Shown: piece after piece, positions 27,029-48,321 of the stretch
Layout: each line of letters begins with the position of its first letter
Position numbering within the stretch: the first letter of the stretch is position 1
Assembly (NCBI GenBank): GCA_019828565.1
Contig: JAHDYR010000048.1
Coordinates: forward strand, 1-64,000
Direction: 5' to 3'
Source of the DNA: Carpediemonas membranifera BICM
Taxonomy: Eukaryota; Protista; Fornicata
Length of the DNA: 64,000 bases
Made by a program: the position numbers and the translations under genes
Notes under the pieces: model-generated
Told to the model about the DNA's origin: nothing
Seen by the model: the letters and a program-made list of their open reading frames with translations, nothing else
Database searches by the model: none

Positions 27029-29533
27029 TCAGATGGCATCGTCATCACCGTCCGCGGGACCGCGGGGAGGATGGTGCTGCAATGCATCCCGAGCGATGAA
27101 ACGTTTTGAGGGACTGCCATCGTCATCCTGCCTGCTGCCCTCCGACCCAGCGTCTACCAGGCCGACCTCCATGTCCCTGAGCCACCCGATGGTTGACTCG
27201 AGGAGCATGGCGGACTCACTGAAGTCGGGATTAGAGCCCTGGCTTCCAGAGAAGTGGCTGCCTGGGCTGCGTCCTGGCTCGTCAGCTGCATCGTCATCGA
27301 CGTCGGGGGCCCGTTTTGATGGCCAGTTATCGTCATCGCCATCGTAGCGTCGTGTCACAGGGCATGGCGTGTGGCGACGCAAGGCTTCACTGAGCGATGC
27401 AACCCGACCGGCGAGGGTCGATTGCAGCTCAGTGTTCTGGACCTTGATCGCGGTGTTCGTTGTGGTTGTGCGCTTTGTCTTCTCGCGCTGTTTCACTTTC
27501 CGGAGTCGGCTAGCTTCAGTTTCGAACGCAGCACCGTGTAACTCGCTGCTGGGCTGCTCCAGATCGACGGGCTCCACCTCCGCAACAGGGGCATCCAATG
27601 GCGGGCACTCGACCCCCAGCTGGCCGAGGACCCAGTCTAGCGCGGCGATCTGCCCGCGGAGGTGGGAGTTGACCAGGCTGAGGTCGTAGTGTCGCTGCCG
27701 GATCACCCCAGGTGTCTTCTTGGCAGCCTCTTCGGGATCCTCACGTGTTTCAGCGGGATAAGGGACTGCTTCCATCGTGCTGCCGTCGAACCCGGAGAGT
27801 GCTCCGGAAATGTCTTCCTCGGCGAGGCCAAGGGCGACCTGGAGGTCATTGATCTCGGCCATCACGGCGTTGATCTCATCCCTCAGGATGGCGTTGTTAG
27901 CAAGGTTGCGCTGCTTTGCCGTCATTCCAGAAGCATCGACCTTGACGTCGCGCTTGGATGGTAGCACACGGTCGGTGTTCCCAGGCGCATTGCCGCGACC
28001 AAGCAGCATCCGTACATAGAGGAGCGCCTTCTGCGCGCCCTGCCGCCACTTGGCCTCCTTCATGACCTTGAGCTTGTGCTCCAGAAGATCGCGTCTTGGT
28101 AGTTCTGCCAAGCCAACCTGGGTGGGAAGCGCACACAGCGACGGCCCTGGATAAGCTGGATGAGCGGCATCTCCAACCTTAGGGGCGAGTATGTCACCGG
28201 AAGGCTTGCCGCCGCAAAGGAAGGAGGGCTGAAGCTTTGGGAGATGCATACGCATGTCAAGGTCCAGGTCCATTGCCTGCATCATGCCGATCATCATTCG
28301 CGAGTCCCCTGCACCATCGCTCCCATTGCTCTTGCGGTAATGCTTGGGCTGGTGGGCGTCGTCGTCGGCCTCGTAGTGACCTCGCTTTGTGTCGTGACCA
28401 TTGGCTGCCCCACCGTCGCTGTCATCGTCGTCGCAAGTGGGCCGGATCACCGCTGCGCCAGACTTGCGGATGTAGCGCTCGAGGAGCTCATCGAGAGATG
28501 CTTCGCGATCAGGCAAGAGCTCGGTGAGCAGCGTGCTCTGCGCGACTAGCTTCGCACTCATATCGTCCAGAAGGACCTCCTCTTTGCGTTTTCTTTCTGT
28601 CTTGAGTTGACCGACTTTCTTCTCCCTCTTATCGTCGCTAAGCCCAGCATCGGGTTCCTGCCGCTCGACAGGATCAGGCTCGGGGATTGCGTTGGGTGTC
28701 GCGTGACTGCTCGTGACGTTGAGAAGGTTGAGCACCCAGTCATAAGTCTCGACATGCCCACGCAGCCTGCGGTTCTCGAGACGACACTCGAAGTTGTTCG
28801 CGATAGAGGCCCTCTTGCCGCTGCGTCTCCGTCGAATTGGGGAGGGAAGGCGGAATATTTTGCCAAGCCTCCTCTGATCTGAAGGTGGGCGTCTCAGGGC
28901 CTCGACGATCTTGCCCTCACACCGCTCTAGTGCCTCCCTGAGAGAGGCAATCTCTCCTGCAATGAGCCTGATCTCCGCGCGAAGCCTGTCCCTCTTCCAT
29001 TTCGCTCGATCATTTGATCCCTCGATATCGGCGGGGGCTTCGAAGTCGAGCACGCTTGGCATGGCTCTATCAGTGGGGTCGAACTGTACTGGGTCGGTGA
29101 TGAGGCCGCAGGCCCAAAGTTTCTGTTGGATCTCTTCTTCGGATTCACGAGCACCCTGCAACCAACAAAGCAACTCCATCAGCTCTAGCTTGCGCTGCAG
29201 AAGCGGCCCAGTAGTTCTAGGTAGCGTGTCACTCGACAGGGTGTCGACATTGTGCCTCCGTGATGGCCTCTCCATGGTCTCCATTGGCAGCTCATGTGCT
29301 CTGGGCGGGAGTGGGATTCGGGACTCACCGGATGACTGGTCAGATGAAACATCTTGGCCCTCCGTGACGTTGATGTTCTGGGACGATGGGAGCTGACACC
29401 TGTATACAGATCCATCGAGAAGGTCAACAATGGGGATGCTCGAAGCGTTTGCCTTCTGCTGGGAATCTTCAGGCAGAGAAGCGCTATTGTCTGGCAAATT
29501 ACCACGATTGCCCGTCATTTGCTGGACTTTCAC
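27029..29533 (-). CDS. Hypothetical protein with two diverged copies of an unrecognised ~300-aa helical module
   Basis: 834-aa ORF; LLQRKLELM..WLQGA / LLEHKLKVM..WRQGA and LRGHVETYDWVL / LRGQIAALDWVL. Confidence 0.75.
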   Translation of the reverse strand: MKVQQMTGNRGNLPDNSASLPEDSQQKANASSIPIVDLLDGSVYRCQLPSSQNINVTEGQDVSSDQSSGESRIPLPPRAHELPMETMERPSRRHNVDTLSSDTLPRTTGPLLQRKLELMELLCWLQGARESEEEIQQKLWACGLITDPVQFDPTDRAMPSVLDFEAPADIEGSNDRAKWKRDRLRAEIRLIAGEIASLREALERCEGKIVEALRRPPSDQRRLGKIFRLPSPIRRRRSGKRASIANNFECRLENRRLRGHVETYDWVLNLLNVTSSHATPNAIPEPDPVERQEPDAGLSDDKREKKVGQLKTERKRKEEVLLDDMSAKLVAQSTLLTELLPDREASLDELLERYIRKSGAAVIRPTCDDDDSDGGAANGHDTKRGHYEADDDAHQPKHYRKSNGSDGAGDSRMMIGMMQAMDLDLDMRMHLPKLQPSFLCGGKPSGDILAPKVGDAAHPAYPGPSLCALPTQVGLAELPRRDLLEHKLKVMKEAKWRQGAQKALLYVRMLLGRGNAPGNTDRVLPSKRDVKVDASGMTAKQRNLANNAILRDEINAVMAEINDLQVALGLAEEDISGALSGFDGSTMEAVPYPAETREDPEEAAKKTPGVIRQRHYDLSLVNSHLRGQIAALDWVLGQLGVECPPLDAPVAEVEPVDLEQPSSELHGAAFETEASRLRKVKQREKTKRTTTTNTAIKVQNTELQSTLAGRVASLSEALRRHTPCPVTRRYDGDDDNWPSKRAPDVDDDAADEPGRSPGSHFSGSQGSNPDFSESAMLLESTIGWLRDMEVGLVDAGSEGSRQDDDGSPSKRFIARDALQHHPPRGPADGDDDAI
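27127..28084. repeat. 958-bp coding cassette, copy 1 (copy 2 at 34458-35415)
   Basis: Colinear, same orientation, constant offset 7331, scattered substitutions. Confidence 0.96.
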
Positions 29534-29899
29534 TCCTTTTGGTTTTAAAGCATTGCCGACAAAGTGACACAGCCCGAATTACATTATACATTTGTCTAAC
29601 ATAACAGTGTGTTTTATGTCCATAACACCTTCTAAGACTATGAGAGCCACTCCTTTGATACATAGCCATCAGTTGACTGTTCCACCGGCTTGTGCCCTTG
29701 TTTCCGACTCGATAACGGCCATTTCGTCTGAGAAACCGACTCAGTCGTTTGGCACGGGTTGGTCCTGTTGGTGACAGCAGACAACGGTAGCTGGAAGTCT
29801 CATTTGGTGTGACGAGACAAGAGGGTCCAAGAATTTGGTGGTGTCATGATGGAAAAACGACCGATCTCTCTTTGAACGCATGGTTGCATCCAATTCTAC

Positions 29900-31636
29900 G
29901 TGCGATAGTGCTAGAACACCGCTGATTGTGATGCATCGCCTTTCTGCCACGGCGGCAGGTGATGTGCCTGGCGACATTCCCAATCTTATCCGCCATGCTT
30001 TCTCCAGACACTTCAACGAGGTTCTTCCAGAAGCACAGATATAGAGACAACTATACCGACCAGCTCCACTAAGCAGGAACTCCTCGCCATGCTTACCACG
30101 ATGCCCCCACTCGTTCCAGCTGCCAGTTCCTCCTCAACCGAGCTCGTACCACACTCGAGGACTGCAAGTAGGACACTGACGGAGACGGAGGTCAGCATGA
30201 ACATCACGCTGCTTCCTGGCCAGGACCTCCCCGCGCGATTCTTCACCCTGCTCCAGGGCACGCTGGGGCCATCCTCATGCACGCTGGGGCCGACCCGGAC
30301 CTGGAGAACACTGAGACACATTCCGAACTCTCGCAGAAGGAAATGTGGTTCCTCTGCAGGAAGTTCTACTTCAGCATGCTCGTCGCTGAGAAGGACGGCA
30401 GCGTCAGGTCGATTGCATACAGCTCGACGTCTTCAGAGCCTTTTTACGAGCCTGGATCTGCCCCAGACGAGACTACTGATACTGTGTGGACTCTCCATCG
30501 GTTCGCAGGCCCAGTTTTCGAGCGGGGACCTTGTAGCACCAGATTTACCTGGGTCCGCATGCCGCCAGTGTACGAAACCACTGCCCATGACGCATGCTTC
30601 ATCGCCCAGACCGTGAAGGGCCTCTACTGGTGGAGATCTGAAGTGATTTCCAATGATGGGCCAGTTCGGAGTTGGAATGACATGAGCTACGACTTCAGTA
30701 TCCCATGCTCAGGGTGGGGTGGGCAAGCAGTCGAGGCTACTTGTTGGGGTGAGTCTATCGAGCAGCAATAAGACCCCAGCTGGGCTCCGGGATGGATCGA
30801 AACTTGCTGTCCAGCCCTTGTTCCATTCACCGACTGCCCTAAAGTCGCCAGGTACGCTGCCAGCCTGCCCCACTGGCGGAAACATCGTATAGTGCGCTCG
30901 ATCGTAGATGTAGTGGGATGCATATTCCTGCTGACGCCTGTTGACCTTGTTGTCTGGGGTGACGTCGCTGAGGAGTTCGCAGGTAACGCCGCGAAAGGCC
31001 TGACTTCATTCTGTCCAGTCAGCCTTCCGTCAGGTTCTGTCCCAGATCACATCATGACAGAGTCTGGCGTTGTGGTTTTGACGTGTGGTCGGAAGCAGAT
31101 GATCGCTGACCGCGACAAACCCGAGCTTGAGATCGGTTGGTCAGGTGGTCCAGAGCAGCAGTTTGTGGATTTACCGTTTTGGGTTGACCGCATTCACCAC
31201 GTTTCCGTCTTTCCTTTCGTTCAGTATCTTCCTCAGCGGCGACGACAAGATTCTTACCAGGGCCGGGGTCGACGAAGTTCTTTCCCATGATTTCAGGGGG
31301 ATTTATGAAGACAGCGAGACAAAGGTGTGGGCCACTGAAAGCGAGACGCGACACATTTGTACCAGAGAGCGTATGCTTGATGCGTACATCGATGGGGGGA
31401 AACTGGCACCAGGTATTGTCGAGCGTTCCGTTCAATTTGCTGCAACTCACTTCAGTGCACGTGACGAGTGCGTGATGTTCTGCGACAAGCGGCTGCTGGT
31501 TCCTCTCGGATGGAGAAGATGTGACGCGATGCTCTGCGCCAGACTATGGGACGAGTATTATTTGGTGTTGTTGACAAGTTTTAAAGATCAGAGAGTGGTG
31601 TGTATCGAGATCTGTTACTGCCAATTGGAGGCATAA
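29900..31636 (+). pseudogene. Degraded, inverted paralogue of the central domain of the 31816-35868 protein
   Basis: Fragments in different frames (GDVPGDIPNLIRH, SMNITL...TLLQGT, AGADPDL...WFLCRKFYF, FTDCPKV, LLTPV, LPSGSVPD, FVDLPFWV) each match the intact gene in order, with stops and frameshifts between them. Ends are approximate. Confidence 0.8.
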
Positions 31637-31815
31637 TACACATCAACTAGAATATAAAGCTGGTGATTATGGCCTCTGTGCATCCAGTCATACCCAACCC
31701 AGCTGCTTCAGAGGCCTGGGCGATGATGGCTCCTGGCCAGAAGGAATCAGCGCGAGTCAATAGAGAACAATGATTGAGTTAAATCACATTTACCACATTA
31801 TGCACGCCAACGCGA

Positions 31816-34800
31816 TTAGACCAAAGCTTCGCCAGCCAGGTCGACCTGCGTCTCTTCAGTCACACCTCTCACATCCAGGCCCTTGAGGTCCCACAGCTTG
31901 GCCGTCTTGTCCATTGAGCTGCTGACCAGTGTCGACCCGTCCTGGGAGAAGTCCACACGCCGCACGTTCTGTGCATGGCCGCGAAGAGTACGCATGCACT
32001 TGCCCGTGGCGACGTCCCACAGCTTGATCGTCGCGTCACGGGAGGAAGAAGCAATCATCCTTCCGTCGGGCGAGAATCTGAGTCCGCGAACGAATTGGGT
32101 GTGCGCGCCCTCCTCGAACCTCGCGAGGCAGGCCCCGGTGGCCACATCCCAGATCCGGACGAACCGCTCGTAGCCGCAAGACGCGAGAAGCGTGCTATCA
32201 GGTGAGAAAGCAACGCAGAACACGCTGCCGCCCTGTTCTTCGAGCGTCTGAATCACTGCACCGGACGCAGCGTCCCAGAGCTTGATCGTGCGGTCATCGG
32301 ACCCGGATGCGATCAGCTTGCTGTTGGGCGAGATAGCCACGCAGTTGGTCTGCTTGCCATGATCCATGCCTCTCCAGGCCATGCGGTTCCGGGCCAGATC
32401 CCAGGCGATGATGGCACCGTCACCCGAGCTTGAGGCTGCGAGTGTCTTGTCAGGAGACAGAGCGATGCCGACGATCCACTTGTTGTGGCCCACTAGCGGT
32501 TTGCCAATGAGCTCACCCGTTTCTGCGCTCCACACCTGGACAGTCTTGAGACCTCCAGTGACGAGAAGCTTGCCGTCAGGTGACGCTGCGACATCCCAGA
32601 TCTGCTCACCGGTCGGGACGTTCAGTCTGCACTGGCCGGTGGCATCCCAGATTCGAAGGGTCTGGTCCCAGCTACTCGATGCAACCGAGCCGTCGGGGAG
32701 CATGGCGACAGCAACGACGCTAGCCCAGTTCGACGCAGCGTGGCCACGATAAGTGTAGATGGACTCGTCGATCGCGTGATCGGTCGTCTTGGGCCAGGTC
32801 TGTTGATCCTCGATGGTGACGAGGGGCTTATCACCAGAGTCGAGTGTGACACCGTTGACCTGTCTTTCCACTTGATCCATGCTAAGGTCACTGGCAGTGG
32901 GCGCGGAGTCAAGCTCCACTGTCTCATATCCAAGCTTGGCAGGCAGCTCTGCGATCTGATCAGCGGATGGTGACGCGAGGTCGACTCTGAGCCAACCATC
33001 GTCGGTCTTGACAAAGACTGTCTGCTCGAATGTGCTTGGCGAGAACACGACAGCGGAGGCCTTGGCAGTGATGGAAGCGGTCAGGACTCGCGTGTTCGTG
33101 TCATCGGAGACATCCTTGACGATGCGGGTCGACCCATCGGCCACGAGGGCCACAAGCAGGGGGTGCATGGCGAAGCGTTCAGTCCCAGATGGGAAATGGA
33201 GAGAGCTGGCAAAGTCGCCGGTTGATTCAGGGAGCAGGCCCGACGCGGTCATGGCGGGCGTCGATCGGCCGACAAACATGACCTGCTGGCGACTGCCGAG
33301 CAGGCTGAAGTCGTTGTTGCTGTGAGCCCATTCGACCCAGAACGGCAAGTCGGTGAAGGAACCTCTCTGGTCGTTGCTGCCGATCGCGCCAATGTCGCTG
33401 CCGACGATCTGCCAGTCGCCCATTGTGAGTACGACGCTCTGAGCGGTGGAGACGATGCCATTAGGGATGAAGCCGTCGGGCAGGGCCATGGGGTGGAACA
33501 TGCATACGTCTGCCTCAGGCACGGACTCGTCGATCAGCCCCTTGTTGCCCAGTGAGACGGCGCCGACTGGGGTCAGGATGGCCGTCCAGTCGCGGTGGTG
33601 GTCAATCACCAGCCCGTGTCGGTGCCAGTCGCGGATGCCTGCCACGTATTCGTGCACTTCGGGACAGTGCAAGAACGCGACTCGGGCCGGCCTAGCCATC
33701 CTACGCCTCGGGTCCTGCTCGTTGAATCCGGGAGGGATCGTATCGCGACAGAAGCCGTATACGCCACTCGTTGTGACGAGCAGGATGGAGTGAGTGCCCA
33801 GACCGTGGTGCTCGAGGATCGGGGGGACGTGGACCCTCTGGTACCGGTCCACCTCGCCGAAGGTCGTGCGGAACTCGAAGAGTCGGCCCGCGTTGAACCT
33901 GTGAAGCATGGAGTGGATGTCGCCTGGGTGCTGCGGGTCGAACGACTCGTCTCTGAAGAAGCCGTTGGTCAACGCGACCTGGTTGCAGAAGTAGAACTTC
34001 TTGCAGAGGAACCACACGAGCTTGTCTGCCACTGTGTATGGGTCTCTCGTGGTCTGAGATGCCTGGGACGGGTCGGCTGAGGGGCCGTTGAGGTCCGGGT
34101 CGGCACCGGCTTCCATGAGGATGGCCCAAGCCGTTCCCTGGAGCAGGGTGTGCAGGGCGTCGGGAAGCTCCATGTTCTCGTCGAGCTCGACGTTCATGGA
34201 CAGCGGGGGGCCGTCTGTGAGGATCGAGCGGGCGCGGTCGAGGAGGGTCTGGGCCTCAGGCTTGAGCTCGGGAATGGCATCGAGCATGGCACTGAGCTCG
34301 TCGAGGTCGGCTGGTGTGGGCTCGATGACCTCCGGCTTCTGCACTGACGGCATGACCCCGCCAACGTGCCTCGAGTAGACGTGCCTCAGCAGCGTGGGGA
34401 TGTCCCCGGGGACGTCGGCCGTCACCGCCAGAGAGCGACGATACGCATCAACGAGTGCCTGCCTGCTGCCCTCCGACCCAGCGTCTACCAGGCCGACCTC
34501 CATGTCCCTGAGCCACCCGATGGCTGACTCGAGGAGTATGGCGGACTCACTGAAGTCGGGATTAGAGCCCTGGCTTCCAGAGAAGTGGCTGCCTGGGCTG
34601 CGTCCTGACTCGTCAGCTGCATCGTCATCGACGTCGGGGGCCCGTTTTGATGGCCAGTTATCGTCATCGCCATCGTAGCGTCGTGTCACAGGGCATGGCG
34701 TGTGGCGACGCAAGGCTTCACTGAGCGATGCAACCCGACCGGCGAGGGTCGATTGCAGCTCAGTGTTCTGGTCCTCGATCGCGGTGTTCGTTGTGGTTGT

Positions 34801-35868
34801 GCGCTTTGTCTTCTCGCGCTGTTTCACTTTCCGGAGTCGGCCAGCTTCAGTTTCGAACGCAGCACCGTGTAACTCGCTGCTGGGCTGCTCCAGATCGACG
34901 GGCTCCACCTCCGCAACAGGGGCATCCAATGGCGGGCACTCGACCCCCAGCTGGCCGAGGACCCAGTCTAGCGCGGCGATCTGCCCGCGGAGGTGGGAGT
35001 TGACCAGGCTGAGGTCGTAGTGTCGCTGCCGGATCACCCCAGGTGTCTTCTTGGCAGCCTCTTCGGGATCCTCACGTGTTTCAGCGGGATAAGGGACTGC
35101 TTCCATCGTGCTGCCGTCGAACCCGGAGAGTGCTCCGGAAATGTCTCTCTTGGCGTGGCCAAGGGCGACCTGGAGGTCATTGATCTCGGCCATCACGGCG
35201 TCGATCTCATCCCTCAGGATGGCGTTCTTAGCACGGTTGCGCTGCTTTGGCGTCATTCCAGAAGCATCGACGTCGACGTCGAGCTTGGATGGTAGCACAC
35301 GGTCGGTGTTCCCAGGCGCATTGCCGCGACCAAGCAGCATCCGCACATAGAGGAGCGCCTTCTGCGCGCCCTGCCGCCACTTGGCCTCCTTCATGACCTT
35401 GAACTTGTGCTCCAGGAGCGCGCCAGTCAGAAGTTCGGCCAGGTCCACCTGGATGGGAAGGGAACGCTGTGATGGCACTAATGGATAAACGACAGCAGTA
35501 ACGGTCCCATTCGTTTGCCCCGTGTTCCGCGTACCACGGGGAGGAACGTTGGCTGCGCGGTTGTGGGCCTCGTTGAGATCGTTTCCCGGGACCGGCATCG
35601 CGATTCCGGCAAACTCTTGCATTTGAATGAGTATATCGAGGAATGGCAAGCTAGCACTTTCATATGAGGCACTATGACCACCATCGTGGACAGTAGTCGG
35701 TCCAAATGGTGATACAGAAGACATCTCGTGCCCATTGTTCACCATCGGCTCGTTAGTGCCATTGTTTGCGCCGCTGGCTTGGTTGTTACCACCGGGCGCG
35801 GTCATCGACGGGTTATCGATGCTTCGGTTTTTGGTGTCTCCCGAGTTATATCGTTTACGCGTGTACAT
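31816..35868 (-). CDS. Chimeric 1350-aa protein: shared cassette module + 'WFLCKKFYF' domain + C-terminal WD40 propeller
   Basis: About seven WD40 repeats (approx. 31870-32750; ASGSDDRTIKLWD etc.); the N-terminal part equals the 958-bp cassette. Confidence 0.88.
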   Translation of the reverse strand: MYTRKRYNSGDTKNRSIDNPSMTAPGGNNQASGANNGTNEPMVNNGHEMSSVSPFGPTTVHDGGHSASYESASLPFLDILIQMQEFAGIAMPVPGNDLNEAHNRAANVPPRGTRNTGQTNGTVTAVVYPLVPSQRSLPIQVDLAELLTGALLEHKFKVMKEAKWRQGAQKALLYVRMLLGRGNAPGNTDRVLPSKLDVDVDASGMTPKQRNRAKNAILRDEIDAVMAEINDLQVALGHAKRDISGALSGFDGSTMEAVPYPAETREDPEEAAKKTPGVIRQRHYDLSLVNSHLRGQIAALDWVLGQLGVECPPLDAPVAEVEPVDLEQPSSELHGAAFETEAGRLRKVKQREKTKRTTTTNTAIEDQNTELQSTLAGRVASLSEALRRHTPCPVTRRYDGDDDNWPSKRAPDVDDDAADESGRSPGSHFSGSQGSNPDFSESAILLESAIGWLRDMEVGLVDAGSEGSRQALVDAYRRSLAVTADVPGDIPTLLRHVYSRHVGGVMPSVQKPEVIEPTPADLDELSAMLDAIPELKPEAQTLLDRARSILTDGPPLSMNVELDENMELPDALHTLLQGTAWAILMEAGADPDLNGPSADPSQASQTTRDPYTVADKLVWFLCKKFYFCNQVALTNGFFRDESFDPQHPGDIHSMLHRFNAGRLFEFRTTFGEVDRYQRVHVPPILEHHGLGTHSILLVTTSGVYGFCRDTIPPGFNEQDPRRRMARPARVAFLHCPEVHEYVAGIRDWHRHGLVIDHHRDWTAILTPVGAVSLGNKGLIDESVPEADVCMFHPMALPDGFIPNGIVSTAQSVVLTMGDWQIVGSDIGAIGSNDQRGSFTDLPFWVEWAHSNNDFSLLGSRQQVMFVGRSTPAMTASGLLPESTGDFASSLHFPSGTERFAMHPLLVALVADGSTRIVKDVSDDTNTRVLTASITAKASAVVFSPSTFEQTVFVKTDDGWLRVDLASPSADQIAELPAKLGYETVELDSAPTASDLSMDQVERQVNGVTLDSGDKPLVTIEDQQTWPKTTDHAIDESIYTYRGHAASNWASVVAVAMLPDGSVASSSWDQTLRIWDATGQCRLNVPTGEQIWDVAASPDGKLLVTGGLKTVQVWSAETGELIGKPLVGHNKWIVGIALSPDKTLAASSSGDGAIIAWDLARNRMAWRGMDHGKQTNCVAISPNSKLIASGSDDRTIKLWDAASGAVIQTLEEQGGSVFCVAFSPDSTLLASCGYERFVRIWDVATGACLARFEEGAHTQFVRGLRFSPDGRMIASSSRDATIKLWDVATGKCMRTLRGHAQNVRRVDFSQDGSTLVSSSMDKTAKLWDLKGLDVRGVTEETQVDLAGEALV
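34458..35415. repeat. 958-bp coding cassette, copy 2
   Basis: Matches 27127-28084. Confidence 0.96.
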
Positions 35869-36690
35869 ATAACAAATGCCCCACTGGGTCCCAGAGACAA
35901 GTCAAGGAGACTGGCGCCAGATCCCCTGTGCTATGCTCTTTGGCCGTTTCACCCAGCACTCTGCGGTCTTGCGATGACATTGTGACATTGTGAAGTATCA
36001 TAGAGTGCACAGTGCAAGCACTGCGTCTCTCCACTTCAATTAGCTTGCCCGGAGGAGAAGACTAGCGGCTGGTTAGCCGTAATTGGTGTATTGGGGTTAT
36101 AGTTGGGAAGACGGGCTGGATTTCTGAAAGCACTGGCTTGATACTGTGCATCCGTCATGAGGCCGCAATCAACTCGGTGGAGTCAGAGGGTAAGTTTAGT
36201 GGTGGTGCGGTGGAGTCAGGGACGGTCGCTCCACGCGTGACCCGTCCCGACATCCCCCTCAAAAAATTAGCCCCGTTCCCGTGCTGTTCAGCAAAGTGGA
36301 CGACTTCCCTTGACTCGGCCCGATCCGATTGCGACCAAATCTTCTCCGAAGAGTGGGGCCGAACAATCCAAGATGTTCTGTGCAGCAGTCTTGTCTCTGT
36401 GGGAGAGATTGAGCCAAGTGGTGGTGGATCGGAATTGAGGCGTTGCTGTCTGTACCATGGAGCACCTTGACAATTCAGGTTGTGGCATCGCATCGTGCGC
36501 CTCGTGTAGCGAGTTCTACGGAACCTCGCGCGGCAGAAGGGGCAGACGAGTGAGATACTGCAGTCTTCCGATACTGATTTTTATAAACTGCACAATGACT
36601 CAGGGGTGCAGGGCAATTGATGTCACAACATGCAGGGCCCAACCACCCATGACACAGCGCCATTCAATCATATTTTACAACCAATCATCC

Positions 36691-38605
36691 TCATGCTCTA
36701 ACATCCAGAGTCCTCCGACAACCCTGGCACGTGATTTGCCGTCTAGTCGCGCTGACCTTCTTGTTCTCGTACTCACAATGGGGGCAAGCGACCGTCCGTT
36801 GGGAATCCAAGTCTTGCGGGAGGTCGACTGTCTGGCGTGGCGCTATCTCACACGGGCGGTTGTAGTGGCGGAGGTGTTCCGCCTGATCGGCCATGCGGCG
36901 AAGGCACTTGTGGCAGAACTGTTGACCACAGAAAGGACATGTGGAGATCTTGCAACTTGCTAGGCTCCCTTCGCGGGATGCGAGCTCGCCACACGCGGGA
37001 CAGCGGCGATTGACGGGGACGTCCACAGCAGTGCCTCCACCGAGCGTGACCAGCTCGCAGTTCTGGAGGTATTCTCTCTGCTCAAGCAGTAATTTGATCT
37101 CGGCATGCGTGAAGCGGTGCTCGTCTCTTCTGATGACATAAAAGTTTGCGGCCGCTCCATCTTCCACAGCAGGAACGCAGTCCGCGAAGAGCTGGCGCAT
37201 GACCTCGGGCTCCTCGATGCGGGGGATGAGCGAGCTGCCGTCGCATGCAGTGTACACGCGGTACTCCTCGTGGAACCTGACCTCTGATGCACCAGGTTGG
37301 GGGAGCTTGGCACCGAACATGTGGAAGGCGAAGCGGCGGCGCGTCTCGTCGTCCTCGAGCACGGCACGGAGGGCGTCCTGCACACCGTGGCTGTCCGCGG
37401 GGAAGCGCAGCACTGCCATGACGGCGTCGACCGTGAGCGGGTTGGGGCGCACGAGCAGGGCCCGCAGCTGGGCGGCGGTCAGCGCGGCAATCATCTCGCT
37501 GAACTGCGTCCTCGCGGTCATTCCGTTACGAATGAGTTGTATCCTGTCAGTAAAGCGGCTCAGCACCTCGCTCCGGTAGGCATTGAGGTCGCCCTCAAAG
37601 CCATCGAGCGGGCACTTTGCCCTGGCTTCCTCTATGGAAGTGTTAAGCGCCCGGTCGACGAGCGGCATCAGCGCAGCTAAGTCGATGCGGCCACCAGCGA
37701 GCGCGACGAGCCAAGTGTTGCTGACCATGTCGGCCGGAAGACGGATCCCGTCGAGCAGCATGAGCTGCAGCACGCGGCCGAGCCCCAGCAGGACGGGGCG
37801 CAGGTCGTCGATGGGATAGTCGAGGGCGTCAGGCATGAAGACCAGCGTGCCCTCAGTCACTCGGAAGACCGGCACGGAGAATCTCATGGTGCCGATGGAC
37901 TGGGCAATTGAGGTCTGCGGCAGCTTGACGACCAGGTCGGGCAGGGCCTTCGCGGACTCCTTGCCAGACAGTGTCGCGGGTACCGCTAGAAGGTCCTCCT
38001 CGCAAGCACCGATGTTAGTCAGAGTGTTGCTGAGGTTGTCGTCGAGGGTGAGGTCAAGAGGGTCCTCCGCAAACATCTTCAGCCGGGTGCGGTCGATGGC
38101 GTCGACAAAGGCGTGGGCCATCGCGAACCTGCTGCTCGCCGCGTTGAGGTCGACCTCGGGGTCCAGCTCGTTGGCAGAGGCGGCGAAGAGGCCGTCGGCC
38201 AGCGCGCGGCGGACGGACCAGCGGGCCTCGAGGTGGGTGGCGAGCATACCGCAGAGCACCTCGCGTAGGGCTTGGGGGACTGCGACGGTGGCGAGCAGGG
38301 CGTCGCAAAGCTTGTCTTCGTTGACGGTTGAGAACTCTTTGAGAGTTCCCATGAGGAGAGCGAGCAGCTGCTGGCAGAAGGCGGGGTAGTCCGGCGCCAT
38401 GGCCCCGAGCATCGTCAGGCCCGCGTGGTAGACGTCAGCGGCCTGCTGCTCGCGGTGGCTCAGCTTCTTCCCGGAATTGCGGGCGGCGATCTCCTCGGGC
38501 GCGCTGAAGGCGAGCGTGCCGATGTTGACTCCGGTCGCAGTCATGTTCACGGCGTCCATGTTCGAGGCCGTCTCGAAGTCGACGAGCACGGGGTGGCCCT
38601 CGCGC

Positions 38606-38638
<33 letters not shown>

Positions 38639-41600
38639 CAGATGCCCGCGCTGTGCAGGTCGTGGATCGCGGTGAGCAGGCCGTGGAGCAGTCTGCGCTG
38701 AGTGTCGGGCGAGTCGGCTGGGGCGTCGCGCAGGTGGTTTTCAAGGCGCTCCATGACGACCGAGCAGGTCTGCTCAGCGAGGTTGATGAGGACGAAGTGC
38801 AGCTTTGGCACTGCGGGACTGTGCGCCATGCGCGACAGGATACCCGCCTCGCGGTCGCAAAGCTTCCGCTGGTGCTCGTTGTCGAGCTTGAAGGTCTTGC
38901 CGAAGTAGGTCTGGCCGTCGCGGGTCACGATCTGGCACAGCGCTCTGTTCTCGCTGACGGTCGACTCGACGGCGAAGTCGGACATCGACAGGTCGACGAG
39001 CATCTCGGGGAGGTCCATGAGGTGGGCCAGCCCCATCTCGCGCAACTCGGCGAAGAGGCTGGCCGACGGCGCGGTGAGCTCCTTCAACTCAGGACAGAGC
39101 CGGACGAGCTGCGGCGTGCGGCGGGCCAGGGCGGTCTCCATGGCCTCGAGCTGGATCTGGACTGCCTCGAGCTTCTCCTCATTAGCAGCTGCCAGAGCAA
39201 TCTCCCGACGACTGTTGTTTCTGGCGATATCCTCCTGCAGCCACTGAGCGTTTTGCCTCAGCTGCTGGTAATCGCCCAAATCGTGGAAATCGCGGGCGAT
39301 GCTGTCGGCCTTGGCGAACCCCGAAAGATGGCTATTGGCCCCTGCCACAAGGCCACGGAGCTGAAGGATCTTGAGTTGGTCGGGGGGCGTAAAGTCGGCA
39401 GTTTTAGACCGCTGACTGGCCCAAGACCACGCTTGACGTACAGAAGGATGAAGGAAGGCGCGGAGGTTGGCGAATCGGTCGGTCCCGACCTTCTGCTTGG
39501 GGACTTCGGCGAGCAGGGTGCGCATATCCTCAAGGGAGGGAAGCACAGGGTTCTCCATCTCAGCGACCCTGGCGAGCAATGCAGCGGCCGTCTCGGCGTC
39601 TTCAGCGACGCGCTTCTCCAGCAACGCGACACCAGCCTCGGCCTGGGCGATGATCAGACTATAATCAGCAGTCCTAGTCTCCGGCAGACGTCGAGCAGAC
39701 CCAAGCCTGCCGCTGAGCACCTCAGGTGAGGGTACAGCAGTGTTATCGTGAACAGGGACGGAGAATGAAAGCAGGGGGTGGTCCTTGAGCATCAAGTTCA
39801 CCTCGATGGCCTGCTTCAATCTCAGTTCAGCGCGGAGTGAGGCAATCTCACTCTTCATCGTGTGATAAATAGTGGAGTTTGCCCGGGCAAGCACTTCGCA
39901 GACCTTGCTGCTGTGTCTATCGGTCACAAACAGCCCGCCCTTCATGGTGACAGTCGAGCTGGTCGGTCTGAACTCAACAGCAACCGCGGAAGGCATTGAG
40001 GTGCTCGATGCGACGTGGGTCAGGGCCAGCTCGAGGTGTGACAGAAAAGCGACCGAGAGTTGGACGTCAGCGCCGACCTCGCGAGCACAGAAGAGGTGTA
40101 TCCGCTTGGCCTCTTGGAGCTTATTGTACTTGAGGAGGATCTTCTTGATCTCGACAATCTCTGGCCCCACCATCATGTGATGAGAATCCATGCGGACAGT
40201 AGCTCTGGGTGCATCGAGCTGGACGCTGAATGACCGTGGGGCGACGCTTGAGCTCTCCAAATGCTCGAGCAGCTTTGTTAGACTGGGAAGATCGGCGTGA
40301 GTGACGCAGAGGTCTGTTTCCTCAGTGATCGGCTCGGCGCAGATCTCGGACAGCCGCCTGCTGAGCTGCGCACGGTTGAGCGGGTTGAGCGCGGTCTGCA
40401 CCTCGGCTTTCTCAGGAGACGACTGGAAGCCGTTGCGGTCATAGCTGATGGTGCATTCGGGGCGGGTCAGCCTCATCGCGAATGAGGTGGGCAAGGTCTC
40501 CCGCTGCAGCAGGAGGCCAGCCACGGTCTTCAGGTCGCCAATCGTGAGCGGCGCGTGCTCGCCCAGGCTGATCTCATTGTCGGTCGAGATGGCGTCGAGG
40601 TGGGCGGTCAGGAAGCTGAAGCCGCTGACAACATAATCGACAACATCGCTGGGTGGGGCGACCTCGAAGCCGGTCGGGCCGAGGGTGACGGTTGTGGCTG
40701 GGTCAGCCAGCCGCATCTCGAAGGAGCGGGGGGCAACCTTCCGTTCAGTCAGTATGGCGAGGGCCACGTTGAGGTCGCCAATCGTGAGCGGCGCGTGCTC
40801 GCCCAGGCTGATCTCATTGTCGGTCGAGATGGCGTCGAGGTGGGCGGTCAGGAAGCTGAAGCCGCTGACAACATAATCGACAACATCGCTGGGTGGGGCG
40901 ACCTCGAAGCCGGTCGGGCCGAGGGTGACGGTGGCGGCTGGGTCGTCGAGCTGAACCTCGAATGAGCGGGGCGCGACCCTAGAGGCCTCGACGTGTGCGA
41001 GGAGCTTCTTCAGCGCGGGAAGGTCGGCGTGGGTGACTCTGATCTCGACATCGCCGCTAATGTCACCAGCACAGATACGAGAGACCTCGTTGCTGAGGCG
41101 CTGATGGTTGAGGGCGTTAAGAAGAGGCTGTACTTCAGCACTGGCTGGCACACAGCCGAAGCGGTTGTTGTTCATTCTCACGGTGCATTCGGGGTGGGCC
41201 ATCCTCATCTCGAATGAGCGGGGCAGGCCCGTGGCGAGGATGTGGATGACGACCCGTGCCAGGTCGGCGAGGTAGAGGGGCGAGTCGTCAGACGGCAGGC
41301 GGATGTCGGCAGCGAGTGTGGGTTGGGCGCAGACCTCCTTGATCTCTGGCGAGTGCTTGATATGCCACTGCTTGGCGGTCTTGTCGTTTGAACCAGACAG
41401 CAGGGTCGATCCGTGCGTCCCAAAAGCGAGGCAGCGGACACTAAGGGCATGGCCGACAAGGGTCTTCAGACACTCGCCGCTGCGTGTGCTCCAGACCTTG
41501 ATGGCTCCGTCGTTGGACCCTGAGACAGCGGTGTCGCCGTCTGGTGCAATAGAGAGGCACCTTACTGTCTTCCTGTGGCCGCTGAGAGTCGCTCTGGGCT

Positions 41601-43656
41601 GCCAGTCCTCCGTGTTCCAGAGAATGACGGTATCACCAGCACTGGACGCGAGCAGATTGCCATCTGATGAGAAGCTCAGGCAGTGCACTCCAAAAGCTCC
41701 CCTCAGAGTGTGCTGCAGGTTGCCCGTCTTCGCGTCCCAGACTCTAATTGCCTTGTCCTTGTCACCCGATCCTGTGACAACCACGCTGCTGTCCGGAGAG
41801 ATAGCTACCGCCCGTACACTATCAGCATGCCTAGAGAGCGTCAGCTTGCACTTGCCGGTCCACTGAATATCCCAGACCATGGCCTTCTTGTCCGTAGAGC
41901 CTGTGACGAGGGTGTTATTGTCATATGAGAACGCCAAGCATGTGACAGCCCCGGTATGGCCAGAGAGTTCGAGCGGCTTCCCCAACTCAGTGTGGGAAGA
42001 CAGGCTTTGACCCGTGTTGGAGTTCCACAGTCGAACCGGACCTTCACCCCCAGAGGCGATGGTCGACCCGTCGCTGGATGCGGCTAGGCAGAATACCTGA
42101 CCGTCATGGGTCATTGTTCGCTCAACTTCACAAGACGGTGTCCAGACGGTGAGCGTGCGATCGGTCGACCCTGTGACCATGCGGTTGTCTGGTAGCATCA
42201 CCACTCCCGTGACGTTGTTGGTGTGGGCATGGATGGACGCGATACAGTCTCGGCGGGCCTTGGCCCACGTGGCGAGGATGGCGTCGAGCTCGTTGCTGTG
42301 CTCGTTGGTGACTAGAGCCCCGAACCTGAGCCTGACGGTGGCGTTGGTATCGGTAAGCCTCATGGTGAAAGCGCTGGGAAGGTCGTCTTGTACCACGAGG
42401 CGGTCGAGGACGCGGGTGAGGTCGGCGACGGTGCCCTCGAGGCGGACGATGGCCGCGGCCGGGACAGGTTGGGCGAGGGTCTGGTCGAGGGCGGTGAGCT
42501 CGGGAGAGCGACCAAGTGACCACTGCTTGGCGGTGTTGTCGTCAGATCCGGAGATCAGTGTGGCAGTGTATGGCAGTGCCCCGTCGGTGAAAGCGAGACA
42601 CCGCACACTCGACGTATGCCCCTCGATCGTTGCAGTACAGGCGCCATTGCCCACGCTCCAGAGCTTGACGTTCTTGTCCTCTGAGCTTGAGGCGAGAGTC
42701 GAGTCATCGGGGGAGAAGCCCACGGCAAACACGGCCTTGGTATGCCCGCGGAGAGTGCTGAGGCAGACCCAAGTGTTGCAGTCCCACACGCGGATATCAC
42801 AGTCGCGGGACCCGGAAGCAAGGAGTGAACCGTCATTGGAGAACACGACACATGAGATTTCCTTGCCATGGCCGACCAGTGTGTGTTCGAGTCGACCTGA
42901 CCTGATATCCCAGATCTTGAGGGCCTTATCGTGGTATCCTATAGCCACAGTGGTGTCGTTGGGTGAAAGGGCAATGGACCTGGCGCACTCGTTGTTTGTG
43001 GCAATCACGAGTGGCTCCTGCACTTCCCTGGCGCCCATCACATGATGGATCACCCAGAGCTTGCTGCTGGATGCAAGGATAAGCTTTTCATTGCGTGTGA
43101 AAGCCATTCCGATGATTCTCGAGCCAACCCGCCGGATGGTATCAACGAGGTGACCCGACTCAGCGTCCCATAGCTTGATCGCACGGTCGGTACCCGCAGT
43201 CGCTACAATCATGCCGTCCCATGACACAGCGAAGGATGAGACGTTGCAGCCGTGACTTAGGCACTTATGGCTGCCGTCGGGGAGGCTGAGGACGACGGGG
43301 TTGTTGGCCGAGTCAAGTCTCGAGACGACAGTCCCGTCGGGCATGATGTCCATGCCTGTAACAGCGTCGCTGTGCCCATGCAAGACCTTGAGGCATCTAG
43401 GGACCGAGTTCCAGGCGTCCAGCAGACTGTCGACCAGACCATGGTGTGCGGTGGCACTGAAGAGGCCCTGGGTCATGGTGACAGTGAGGTTGGGCTCAGT
43501 CAGCCTCATGCTGAACTCGCATGGAAGCTCAGCAAGCGTCGAGAGGTGGTCGACGACGTGGGCGAGGTCGTCGAACGTGAGGGGCGAGGCGCCAATGGGG
43601 ACGAGGTGAAGCTTGTCCTCTGGGGCGAAGACGCGCGTCGTGGCGTCTCTGATCAT
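36691..43656 (-). CDS. 2321-aa multidomain protein: two WD40 propellers, eight ~75-80-aa novel repeats, coiled coil, Ser/Thr kinase, HECT-like domain, IBR/Rcat-like finger, zinc ribbon
   Basis: WD40 GH...WD repeats; HRDLKPEN, DFE, GTLAFSAPE; LGRVLQLMLLDG, LTAAQLRALL, RRRFAFHMFG, VYTACDGSSLIP; RRCPACG...SCKISTCPFCGQQFCHKC; CPHC...CQGC. Confidence 0.88.
40532..40932. repeat. Intragenic direct repeat, period 240 nt (161 nt exact: 40532-40692 = 40772-40932)
   Basis: Read directly; duplicates TVTLGPTGFEVAPPSDVVDY...PLTIGDL. Confidence 0.95.
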
Positions 43657-45231: not shown

Positions 45232-48200
45232 CTATTCCTTGACGAAGTTCCATACCTCAATCTCATCTGGGGTAAACACCGGTGTGCCTGCCAGCAGCGT
45301 GCCTGCCTCCTCGCTGGTCGGCTCAAAGACGCCGAGGCTGTAGCTCTGCTCCAGCCGACTCGAGCAGTTGGTAAAGTCATCCGCGAACACGAGATCGCCC
45401 TGGGGCCCGCCGAACGAGATATATGACCCTCCCCGGGCATCGTTGGACACTAGCGCCTGCATGGGCGTGACCTTGTGATAAATAACGGCCATCTGCTCAC
45501 GGTCAGTGCCGGGCGGGCAGAGGGCGAGCTTGCTGGGGATGAACACATCCTCGGTGAGGGAGAAGAGGCAGCACTTGGCTGACCCCGTCTTAACACCGTT
45601 TGACCGCCACGGGGCAGAGGCGAAACCACCAAAGATGTGCTCACCCACTCTAGCGAGGATGACCGTTGACCCGTTGTCGTCGACCACAGCATGCATGGCG
45701 CCCATATCGCGTCCGTTCTTCCAGTCTGCCCACAGCAGTTTAGTGCTGGGGACTCTCGAGGCGATAGGGAGGGAGAAGTACATAACCTGCTTGGATTCGT
45801 CGCTGGATAAGATGTGAGAGTCGGCAAAGGGGACAGCCGTGAGTGTGACCTGGTTGGCCTCCATCATGGACCGTGTTTCCTCAGCCAGACGGCGAAGGGA
45901 GTACTGCCGGAAGACCTCAGAGAGGTCAGCCCGTTGCTGCTGCTGGTTGGCAGGATCCCGGGCTGTGGCACGAGCTCCAGCAGTCTCTCTGACCGCCTGG
46001 TCGGGGGATGGCGAGGGCGAGGGTGAGGCGTGGCTCATGGCCCCGCTCTGGGGCTGGTTCGTGTGGGGGGCGGACTGGCTGTCAGCCTCACGGAGGGAGG
46101 AGACTGAAGGGCCCCTGGACCGGCGGAGGCGGGTCTCGGAGGCGTCACGGTGCATGTCTGGGCGGGAGGGCTTGTCCGCGGCGGCCATTGGCTCTTGGAC
46201 AGGCTCGGGGCGGGTGGGCTCGGCGATCATGCCCATGTTGTTGTTGAATGCCTGCTCTACAGGCTCGGGGGGCACAGCCTCGTCCCTCTCGGGCTCTTGC
46301 TGCTCTCTCGCCATAGGGGCCGGGCGCTGTTGGCTCGACCACATAGGGTTGGTCTCGGGCTGGGCAGGTTGAGTGGGTTGGGCGGTGAAGCTGGGCGTGT
46401 CGTAGCCCATGTCGCCTTCAGGGAAGGAGGAGGCGGCTGGCTCGACCGGGATGGAGGACTGTTGGCGTTTGTTCTTCATCGTCTCTGCCCACAAGTCGCC
46501 GTTGCGGCGGACGATAGGGGAAGCGGTTTCAGACGCACCTGCGCCGCGAGCAATGACTTTCTCTGCCGGGTGGTTCGGCCCCATCGCCTTGAGCGCGCTG
46601 AACAGCACGCGCTGCTTCTTCTTGCCCTGCTGCTGATCCTGCGCGTTCATCTGATTGAACGTGTTCGGGAGTTCGGTGGGCGTGGGGTCAAAGGGTCTGG
46701 CGGGCGCCTGGGGTGTGGGCTCCTTGGCCTTGCCCTTGTTCCGCTGGAAGAGTGTGGCTCTGAAAGCAGAAGCGCTGGGGGCGGGCTTGAAGTCATCGAA
46801 CCCAAAGGCGTCGCCGTCCTCCAGACCAGGCTGGGGCTGGGGGTCGTAGATGTCCTGGGACACTGTCGGCTGGGCCCACTGCTGCTCGCCGAACTGACCC
46901 ACGCCGCTGTGGGGCTGGTCAAACAGGCCCGCGGGGGTGAAGTTACCCTCGGTGACGTCCATGTCGCCTGTAAGCCGGAGGTCAGCCTCTACGTCGATGT
47001 CGCCCTTGACGATGAGCTTATCGTGCAGGATAGCCCTCATCTGTTGATGACGGCGCCATAGATGGAGGAAGCGGACGGGAGTGAGGTGCTCTCGTTGGGA
47101 GGACAGGAACTGATCGAGCCAGTGGATCTGGGACAACTGGCGCCGCATCTCGATCTCCTCGCCAAGTAGTGTGTTGAGCTTGCTCTGCGTCTTCTCCTGT
47201 AGACGGTATAGGATCTGCTGCAGCTGGCGGTAGATCATCTCCTCGACAGATGCAGAGTTCTTGTACACATCGCGGAGTCTCTCGTCGATCTCCTTAAGGT
47301 GCTCCCTGATGGCATCCCTGCGGGCGTCGAGGAGGGGATCCTGGTCTCCCGAGGCGTTCATCGCCTTCTCGTATGCTTGGTGCACCGACACTAGACGATG
47401 CGTGGCAGACTCACCGGCGCTGTGGTTGCCCTCCATCTTGCACTTAACGCACACAGGCTCCTGGCACGTGGGGCAGAAGTACTCGACGGTCATGTCTGGG
47501 TGGTGGGGGCAAGTTCCGAAGAACAGAGGGTGCTCCTTGATCGGGACACGGACATGGCGGGCCACAAGCTTGTTCGCAGCGTGTACTTCGCGGTCGCAGG
47601 CCGGGCAGAGCTTGGCGCTGTCGGCAGCGCAGTAGACGGTGGCGTTGGCCTCTCCACATGCATCGCAGAGGTACTGCTCGCCCTGGGGGGCCTCGGGGTC
47701 GTACTCGAACTGCACTAGGAAGCACGGCATGATCCTGGCGCCGTCAGCGAGCATATACTTGTGACGGTAGAACTGTACATGCCCTGGGTCGTCCTCCGTA
47801 AAAAAGTTGACGGATGTGGCGCGGTCGGCTTCCATCTCCTTCAAGCGGGCGGCGACTGAGATGCTGTTCTCGCCGTCACAGACGTAGACGGAGTCGTATC
47901 CATCGGGGATTGTGAACTTTTCGTTCGAGGGGTCGTTCTTCTCGGTCTCGACGCAGTAGGGCTTGCCTGTCGCTACCTGGCAGAGAAGGGCCTCATAGCG
48001 GTTGTTCTTAGCGCGCTGGGAGAGGTCCATGAGACCTGTGGTGATCGGGAGCCCCTTCTCGCCAATCTTGAAGCCACGCTGGCAAATGTCGTGGACGGTG
48101 TTCTCATTGTCCAACGTGAGGGTGTTAATCCAGCTTTCGACAATCATGGAGTCCGCAGATAGTCTCTCGAACTGCGCTGCGACGTGTGGGTTAACAACAT

Positions 48201-48321
48201 TCCAAATATTCACAATGCGGGCCTTTGATGAACCCGTGGAGAGATGAAGCAGATACTCTATACGCTGCGCGTCATCACTATCTTCGAGGATCGGCAGGCT
48301 ATGCTCTATCGCCGTGCTCAT
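45232..48321 (-). CDS. Tandem B-box + coiled-coil protein with C-terminal TLDc domain and possible degenerate PARP-like N-terminus
   Basis: CDAC...ATVYCAADSAKLCPACDREVH; CPHH...YFCPTCQEPVCVKC; TLDc-type IFGGFASAPW...LFSL...EIEVW. Confidence 0.85.
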   Translation of the reverse strand: MSTAIEHSLPILEDSDDAQRIEYLLHLSTGSSKARIVNIWNVVNPHVAAQFERLSADSMIVESWINTLTLDNENTVHDICQRGFKIGEKGLPITTGLMDLSQRAKNNRYEALLCQVATGKPYCVETEKNDPSNEKFTIPDGYDSVYVCDGENSISVAARLKEMEADRATSVNFFTEDDPGHVQFYRHKYMLADGARIMPCFLVQFEYDPEAPQGEQYLCDACGEANATVYCAADSAKLCPACDREVHAANKLVARHVRVPIKEHPLFFGTCPHHPDMTVEYFCPTCQEPVCVKCKMEGNHSAGESATHRLVSVHQAYEKAMNASGDQDPLLDARRDAIREHLKEIDERLRDVYKNSASVEEMIYRQLQQILYRLQEKTQSKLNTLLGEEIEMRRQLSQIHWLDQFLSSQREHLTPVRFLHLWRRHQQMRAILHDKLIVKGDIDVEADLRLTGDMDVTEGNFTPAGLFDQPHSGVGQFGEQQWAQPTVSQDIYDPQPQPGLEDGDAFGFDDFKPAPSASAFRATLFQRNKGKAKEPTPQAPARPFDPTPTELPNTFNQMNAQDQQQGKKKQRVLFSALKAMGPNHPAEKVIARGAGASETASPIVRRNGDLWAETMKNKRQQSSIPVEPAASSFPEGDMGYDTPSFTAQPTQPAQPETNPMWSSQQRPAPMAREQQEPERDEAVPPEPVEQAFNNNMGMIAEPTRPEPVQEPMAAADKPSRPDMHRDASETRLRRSRGPSVSSLREADSQSAPHTNQPQSGAMSHASPSPSPSPDQAVRETAGARATARDPANQQQQRADLSEVFRQYSLRRLAEETRSMMEANQVTLTAVPFADSHILSSDESKQVMYFSLPIASRVPSTKLLWADWKNGRDMGAMHAVVDDNGSTVILARVGEHIFGGFASAPWRSNGVKTGSAKCCLFSLTEDVFIPSKLALCPPGTDREQMAVIYHKVTPMQALVSNDARGGSYISFGGPQGDLVFADDFTNCSSRLEQSYSLGVFEPTSEEAGTLLAGTPVFTPDEIEVWNFVKE

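Follow-up and report, generated by a model that had tools for sequence, protein, structure and literature searches.

A Carpediemonas membranifera locus of recombined modular genes from two families, A and B, beside a giant WD40-kinase gene

Carpediemonas membranifera is a marine, anaerobic, free-living flagellate, not a pathogen, with an intron-poor genome. The window analysed here is a stretch of 64,000 nt from strain BICM (assembly GCA_019828565.1, contig JAHDYR010000048.1, positions 1 to 64,000 of the forward strand), in which positions 27,029 to 43,656 hold three long open reading frames (ORFs), all on the minus strand and here called g1, g2 and g3, as well as a pseudogene in the opposite orientation. 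A first-pass annotation, made from the sequence letters, had taken these 16 kb for an accessory system of four units assembled from shared parts. With a probability of about three in four, the stretch is not one system: g1, g2 and the pseudogene are members of two modular families, A and B, known only from C. membranifera, and g3 is a WD40-kinase gene related to them only via ordinary WD40 repeats. The idea of shared parts thus holds for g1, g2 and the dead B copy and fails for g3, whose kinship is with generic WD40 alone. Nor do the 16 kb form a discrete accessory system, as the partners of the modules lie on other contigs and the flanks are housekeeping genes. The locus is rather a local instance of a fast-evolving family of binding proteins that extends across the genome. 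What is new is the A family, joined to three kinds of partner array, together with an A-B-WD40 subgroup and datable mosaics that run from domain border to domain border. All genes discussed are single ORFs, so that no spliced gene model is needed.

The central gene, g2 (31816..35868, minus strand), is a 1350-aa ORF composed of module A, module B (helical head and RCC1-like propeller) and a WD40 propeller, and g1 joins a diverged A-family member, A′, to a second A; ORFs, blastn and protein alignments agree on both compositions, as first proposed. By sequence comparison, g2 is a three-source mosaic, with an A module shared with g1, a B head close to a contig-5 gene, and a B propeller and WD40 close to a contig-10 gene. 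The head, a conserved helical domain of ~165 aa (33949..34458, minus strand), finds its closest relative in the contig-5 A-B gene: g2 residues 461-580 are 75-98% identical to that gene vs 40-59% to the contig-10 gene. At the breakpoint between head and propeller, near 34130, the relationship is reversed: onward from residue 581 there is mostly 63-100% identity to the contig-10 B-WD40 gene (exceptions are two 40-residue windows at 52% and 34%) vs 19-56% to contig 5. The seven-blade B propeller (32869..33948, minus strand) is 80% identical to its contig-10 counterpart in amino acids, and the second propeller, seven WD40 repeats (31864..32751, minus strand), is 79% identical to the same paralogue. 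The DNA matches follow this division, contig 5 matching at 83% starting at residue 469 and contig 10 at 79% from residue 539 on. Module A of g2, compared with all other A modules except that of g1, reaches at most 41% in any 40-residue window and typically 10-30%; no remnant of module A was found upstream of the contig-10 paralogue. There are at least two recombinant borders in g2, both at domain limits, and the domain shuffling suspected from the letters is real, well resolved and stronger than had been claimed. The mosaic was assembled by ectopic recombination or gene conversion among dispersed paralogues.

Synonymous divergence between g2 and the contig-10 gene is 1.3 in the head and 0.4-0.7 elsewhere, and the ratio of nonsynonymous to synonymous divergence (dN/dS) is 0.2-0.3 throughout; g2 is therefore a constrained, working gene. 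The comparison of dN/dS among paralogues, proposed as a check in the first-pass annotation, returns purifying selection for the closest B-WD40 pair. In the tree, g2 and the contig-10 gene group with a support of 100, and this pair groups with a contig-29 gene with a support of 99; the other A-B genes are placed elsewhere, at unresolved positions. A B module is fused to a WD40 propeller in three genes. The WD40 region of g2 contains no internal DNA repeat.

The whole A module of g2 has recently passed to g1. A blastn self-comparison aligns 27127-28154 with 34458-35488 at 95.8% over 1031 nt; the near-identical cassette described earlier is real, but its length of 958 bp has to be corrected to this value (~1.0 kb). 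As had been noted, the cassette lies inside the ORFs and keeps the frame in both genes, and its core is free of indels. It occupies codons 469-802 of g1 (27128..28129, minus strand; similarity at the DNA level reaches 28154) and codons 137-470 of g2 (34459..35460, minus strand). At the protein level, residues 454-802 of g1 correspond to residues 121-470 of g2 with 90.6% identity, and these are the only two copies in the genome that are more than 90% identical. The cassette comprises the entire A module: it stops at '...SEGSRQ', the exact start of the B head in g2, and its last ~30 residues are a linker motif common only to other A-B genes. Because g1 carries the A-B linker but no B, the direction of copying is from g2 to g1.

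The recipient, g1 (27029..29533, minus strand), is an 834-aa ORF (829 aa from the ATG at 29518) that consists of a low-complexity N-terminus, A′, the recent A copy and a 32-aa tail, and it matches no Pfam or PADLOC family. A′ (28274..29236, minus strand; residues ~100-420) is an old, diverged member of the A family with 27-29% identity to A, and g1 looks like an A-only type of gene that has gained a second A. The 334 codons of the cassette core differ at 33 sites, of which 8 are silent and 25 replacing (dN/dS 1.01). Silent changes are confined to the first 50 codons; the 852 nt that follow are 98% identical, with 17 replacing differences and 0 silent ones. Such a run (17/17) has a P of about 0.009 under neutrality, but in a window picked after viewing the data, and it is a mere hint.

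Module A is an orphan module of long helices that is joined to three kinds of repeat array. About 15-20 matches occur in the genome at 22-33% identity. Five genes combine A with a long ankyrin array, one gene has A with ankyrin and B, one has A with B, and two (g2 and one gene on contig 29) have A with B and WD40; several genes of 360-510 aa consist of A alone. The mixing of modules seen in the first-pass annotation is borne out for A, ankyrin, RCC1-like or WD40 repeats following it in different genes. Pfam finds no family in A or A′, the ESM Atlas gives no usable neighbour of A, and a word search with A returns only g1 and g2. A profile built from 12 A modules and run exhaustively against 1.84 billion representative proteins yields 11 strong matches, and the 8 of these that were looked up are all from C. 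membranifera; two further matches, a scallop protein and a read assembly, are marginal. The structure model of A has five long helices, with a predicted local distance difference test score (pLDDT) of 77 and a predicted template modelling score (pTM) of 0.69. Comparison of A folds with the PDB (Foldseek; VIA wide) and the Atlas gives nothing above the noise expected for helical bundles (best Z 6.3). Alignment columns ~285-340 (g2 residues ~345-395) comprise a basic stretch followed by heptad-spaced leucines; a bZIP reading of this stretch was rejected, as no bZIP family appears at E up to 5 and the spacing of the motif does not fit. On contig 1, two A-only genes of 456 aa with the same search statistics lie in opposite orientation at 1,234.9 kb and 1,254.0 kb, ~19 kb apart, and this pair seems to be a further recent duplication within the family.

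Module B consists of the conserved ~165-aa helical head and an RCC1-like propeller of seven blades. The B region of g2 matches no Pfam family; B paralogues match Pfam RCC1 and WD40_RLD, Atlas neighbours of B carry PF00415, and the family consensus contains a GQLGLG repeat motif. An AlphaFold2 model based on 60 family members (pLDDT 77.7) places ~165 helical residues before a β-propeller, for which the top Foldseek matches are the RCC1-like domain of RPGR, RCC1, HERC2 and UVR8 (E 6e-8 to 4e-6, probability 1.0, target template modelling scores 0.44-0.49). The likeness to RCC1, RPGR, HERC1/2 and UVR8 lies in the C-terminal ~390 residues of the model, which form a seven-blade propeller. In contrast to these proteins, to which it is only 10-15% identical, B is preceded by a species-specific helical head, occurs in at least 260 copies rather than a handful, and, as far as its sequence indicates, carries no sign of a role in Ran or GTPase exchange. 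Mean pairwise identity within the family is 0.52 for the head vs 0.35 for the propeller, the last blades being the most variable.

A six-frame search of the genome gives 453 first-look candidates for B, and all of the 78 that were scored are significant. Stand-alone ORFs of ~540 aa with 36-42% identity make up the majority. Of two conserved B motifs, back-translated, one has 101 matches in the DNA against 2 for its control and the other 262 against 1; the copy number of at least 260 comes from these motif matches and includes pseudogenes. Among deposited proteins, clustering at 90% identity leaves 71-77 (297-945 aa) that match the B family or its head, all from C. membranifera. Given 71-77 deposited proteins vs 262 motif hits in DNA, many copies may be pseudogenes, or may have gone unannotated through masking of the family as a repeat in gene prediction. 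In the arrays sampled, one unit of 3.5 kb recurs at 99.9% identity, other copies are 94-98% identical and bear frameshifts, and one inverted pair reaches 91%. On contig 13 (709-719 kb), a tandem unit of 5.45 kb (3.5 kb of it at 99.9%) holds a B gene and a ThiF-family gene, and the spacer between two copies contains an ORF for a papain-type protease; recent segmental duplication therefore amplifies host genes together with B. Birth and death, as originally suggested, describes the B family well, with its tandem arrays, near-identical duplicates and frameshifted copies: the copies multiply by tandem and segmental duplication and decay into pseudogenes. Recent B pairs have a dN/dS of 0.5-0.65.

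The ORFs beside three B arrays are host genes (ThiF, papain, M16 peptidase), and Pfam detects no transposase, reverse transcriptase or integrase in the modules or in these ORFs. The possibility that A and B are ordinary transposon proteins, named at the outset as fatal to a recognition cluster, is not what the Pfam results and the neighbouring genes indicate, and a transposon origin of A and B was rejected, ordinary host genes lying beside the copies.

Between g1 and g2 lies an inverted B pseudogene, as had been recognised from the sequence; the family hidden Markov model (HMM) places it at 29874..31200 on the plus strand. The matches cover HMM positions 10-403 of 557, are broken into four pieces lying in three frames, and contain stops; the pieces were searched separately and never joined. 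Residues 462-868 of g2 match the opposite strand at 29892-31266. The reading of the pseudogene as a recent inverted duplicate of the B module of g2 was rejected, for it is only 31-34% identical to any member of the family; it is an old, independent B copy.

The third ORF, g3 (36691..43656, minus strand), encodes 2321 aa with two WD40 propellers (41317-43404, minus strand), 80-aa repeats, a kinase domain (Pkinase; 38194-38922, minus strand) and a Cys-rich tail (36694-37008, minus strand). The two propellers and the kinase domain, which had been seen in this giant gene from the beginning, are solid. Its WD40 repeats are 32-35% identical to those of g2, no closer than those of any other WD40 protein, and the inclusion of g3 in the same pool of modules was rejected on a WD40 similarity that is generic (32-42%). 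A tandem repeat at 40532-40978 (minus strand; residues ~893-1052) has a unit of 240 nt (80 aa) with 94% identity in DNA and 84% in protein, and weaker copies occur near residues 812 and 1138; the unit belongs to no Pfam family, and the tandem is a recent internal expansion. The kinase domain contains the HRD and APE motifs, but neither DFG nor a VAIK-type lysine motif turns up in simple pattern searches, and it may be atypical or inactive. In the tail, five CxxC pairs occur at residues 2219-2313 and one IBR match scores 17.0 bits, below the Pfam cut-off of 24.3; the tail has no sequence relative in the PDB. The ligase named for this gene in the first-pass annotation would rest on these CxxC pairs and the single IBR match, where an RBR E3 ligase has a RING1-IBR-RING2 triad.

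Since the parts of g2 are all protein-binding (two propellers, a conserved head and a long-helix module), these proteins are read as modular adaptors, and their likeliest function is to act as adaptors or binding proteins of modular build. In A, the long helices would serve self-association or docking, the conserved B head would plug into a common partner, for which Skp1 is a candidate, and the variable propellers would bind diverse protein targets. Repeated exchange of whole modules could then supply new combinations. Expanded adaptor families such as the F-box and BTB-MATH proteins of nematodes and plants evolve by birth and death. Like them, B combines a small conserved head with a variable binding domain and occurs in hundreds of clustered, lineage-specific copies, pseudogenes among them. 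Skp1 is also present in the genome, two matches exceeding the cut-off on contig 26 (near 615.3 kb) and contig 13 (near 109.5 kb). In contrast to F-box adaptors, however, no F-box is detected in the B heads.

Several points weigh against the adaptor interpretation and the family picture behind it. Pfam hmmscan finds no F-box or other family in 11 B heads at E up to 10, and a profile of the head run against PDB sequences returns no F-box protein and no signal of another family. The F-box models PF00646 and PF12937 also find nothing in a six-frame genome search, which was run without a positive control, and an F-box identity of the B head, which gets no sequence support from the Pfam, PDB-profile and genome-model searches, is at most a possible lead. 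The copy counts of B rest on motif hits that include pseudogenes, the tree comes from a quick search and leaves many forks unresolved, and the absence of both modules outside the species may reflect thin sampling of close relatives. With a dN/dS of 1.0 in its A cassette, g1 may be a decaying by-product rather than a working gene. Function, finally, is inferred throughout.

A different use of the same architecture would be an intracellular repertoire for recognition or defence that lacks an NTPase switch, in which A would be the common head for signalling or oligomerisation, with diversified sensors in the form of ankyrin, RCC1-like and WD40 arrays. This is unlikely, and hardly less so is a more specific version in which A and B heads are recombined with these sensor arrays by ectopic gene conversion at domain borders to give a switch-less combinatorial repertoire; a role in defence is possible. 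The combination of head and repeats resembles the logic of NLR and TRIM proteins, the B family, confined to this species, is huge and clustered and contains many pseudogenes, and whole modules have been exchanged among paralogues. Further points in its favour are the dN/dS of the recent B pairs and, with the reservation already made about the choice of window, the replacement-only run in the A cassette. As in fungal NLR/HET and plant R-gene (STAND) loci, an N-terminal module is joined to ankyrin or WD40 arrays at the C-terminus (seven WD40 repeats in g2, ankyrin in other A genes), and clustering, gene conversion and pseudogenes accompany it.

In contrast to NLR and STAND proteins, however, neither a NOD/NTPase domain nor a recognised death or effector domain was found in g1 and g2. 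No NTPase family of Pfam is found in g1 or in residues 1-1030 of g2 at E up to 0.1, and the Walker A pattern GxxxxGK[ST] occurs in neither gene; the first-pass annotation, which had seen no NACHT or NB-ARC switch, is right on this point. Scans with Pfam and PADLOC find no NTPase switch, TIR, HET or other death or effector domain, PADLOC matching only the kinase domain of g3 and the WD40 repeats of g2, both generic, and no specific defence model. The resemblance of A to the coiled-coil of a plant resistosome (Z 5.8) falls within the background that helical bundles give. In g2, the WD40 repeats are not of the highly self-similar type that undergoes concerted evolution in NLR/HET genes, and the closest paralogue pair, in contrast to R-gene loci, is under purifying selection, no domain-wide dN/dS above 1 being observed. 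Nothing ties these genes to infection or prey.

Equally improbable is a role as cytoskeletal or flagellar scaffolds, in which the expansion of the families would serve cell architecture. Carpediemonas is a fornicate, like Giardia, whose Nek and Protein 21.1 families are large and dynamic, vary between strains and combine ankyrin repeats with coiled coils and in some cases RING domains, with an obscure purpose (PMC3218828). In both organisms, large and dynamic families bring together ankyrin arrays, coiled coils, kinase domains and RING-type tails; long ankyrin arrays occur in five A-family genes, g3 carries a kinase alongside repeats and a Cys-rich tail, and the best structural match of B is a domain of RPGR, a ciliary protein. 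In contrast, no sequence relationship to the Giardia proteins is detectable: A and the B head were not found in Giardia in the searches made, and matches come from Carpediemonas only. The TALM ankyrin signature of the Giardia type is rare (0-3 motifs per A-ankyrin protein despite many ankyrin repeats), and more than 260 copies with many pseudogenes would be unusual for structural parts.

That A and B are genes of mobile elements, or that the duplication is an artefact of an assembly built from nanopore reads (PMC8516963), is highly improbable in spite of the high copy number and the near-identity of some copies, since no transposase, reverse transcriptase or integrase accompanies the copies, the duplicated units carry host genes, a paralogue pair is under purifying selection, the two cassettes differ by 33 substitutions without indels and sit in frame within unique flanks, and g1 and g3 match deposited gene models.

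The locus offers clean, datable exchanges of whole modules among dispersed paralogues; each of the three breakpoints falls at a domain border. It also links the A family to the large RCC1-like family. To our knowledge, neither innate-recognition nor large adaptor repertoires have been described in free-living metamonads. If the proteins are adaptors or receptors, they would show a protist building binding diversity without a dedicated switch domain. Were they a recognition repertoire, they would be a metamonad counterpart of the NLR, TRIM or F-box receptors of immune type, made from parts without known homologues. If they are neither adaptors nor receptors, the locus would still document, in good resolution, how genes are born by fusion in a compact genome with few introns.

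The assembly comprises 24.2 Mb in 69 contigs with 53-63% GC and eukaryotic rDNA arrays; a bacterial origin of the DNA was rejected on its size and rDNA. These properties agree with the genome paper, which reports 57.1% GC and probable haploidy (PMC8516963). That paper does not mention these families, and in the library searched no paper was found in which the species name and RCC1 occur together. The deposited protein models are identical to g1 (829 aa, from the first ATG) and to g3, and g2 is deposited with a later Met start (35745) that gives 1309 aa. The flanking genes encode an M3 peptidase, a kinase, a DUF218 protein, a B-box/TLDc protein, the Spb1 rRNA methyltransferase and an ABC transporter; they are housekeeping flanks, with no mark of an accessory island. 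The B-box/TLDc protein is a 1029-aa ORF (window positions 45232-48321, minus strand) two genes downstream of g3, after the DUF218 gene, and its pairing of two B-box zinc fingers with a TLDc domain is unusual. Elsewhere in the genome, six copies of the small-subunit rRNA occur in a tandem array with a period of ~9.5 kb (contig 23, 3.8-53.4 kb) and on contig 26 near 937 kb. Their lengths range from 1777 to 1793 nt and their Rfam scores drop from 604 to 541 bits, which suggests that the rDNA units are unusually heterogeneous among themselves. The internal transcribed spacers ITS1 and ITS2 are each only ~110 nt long.

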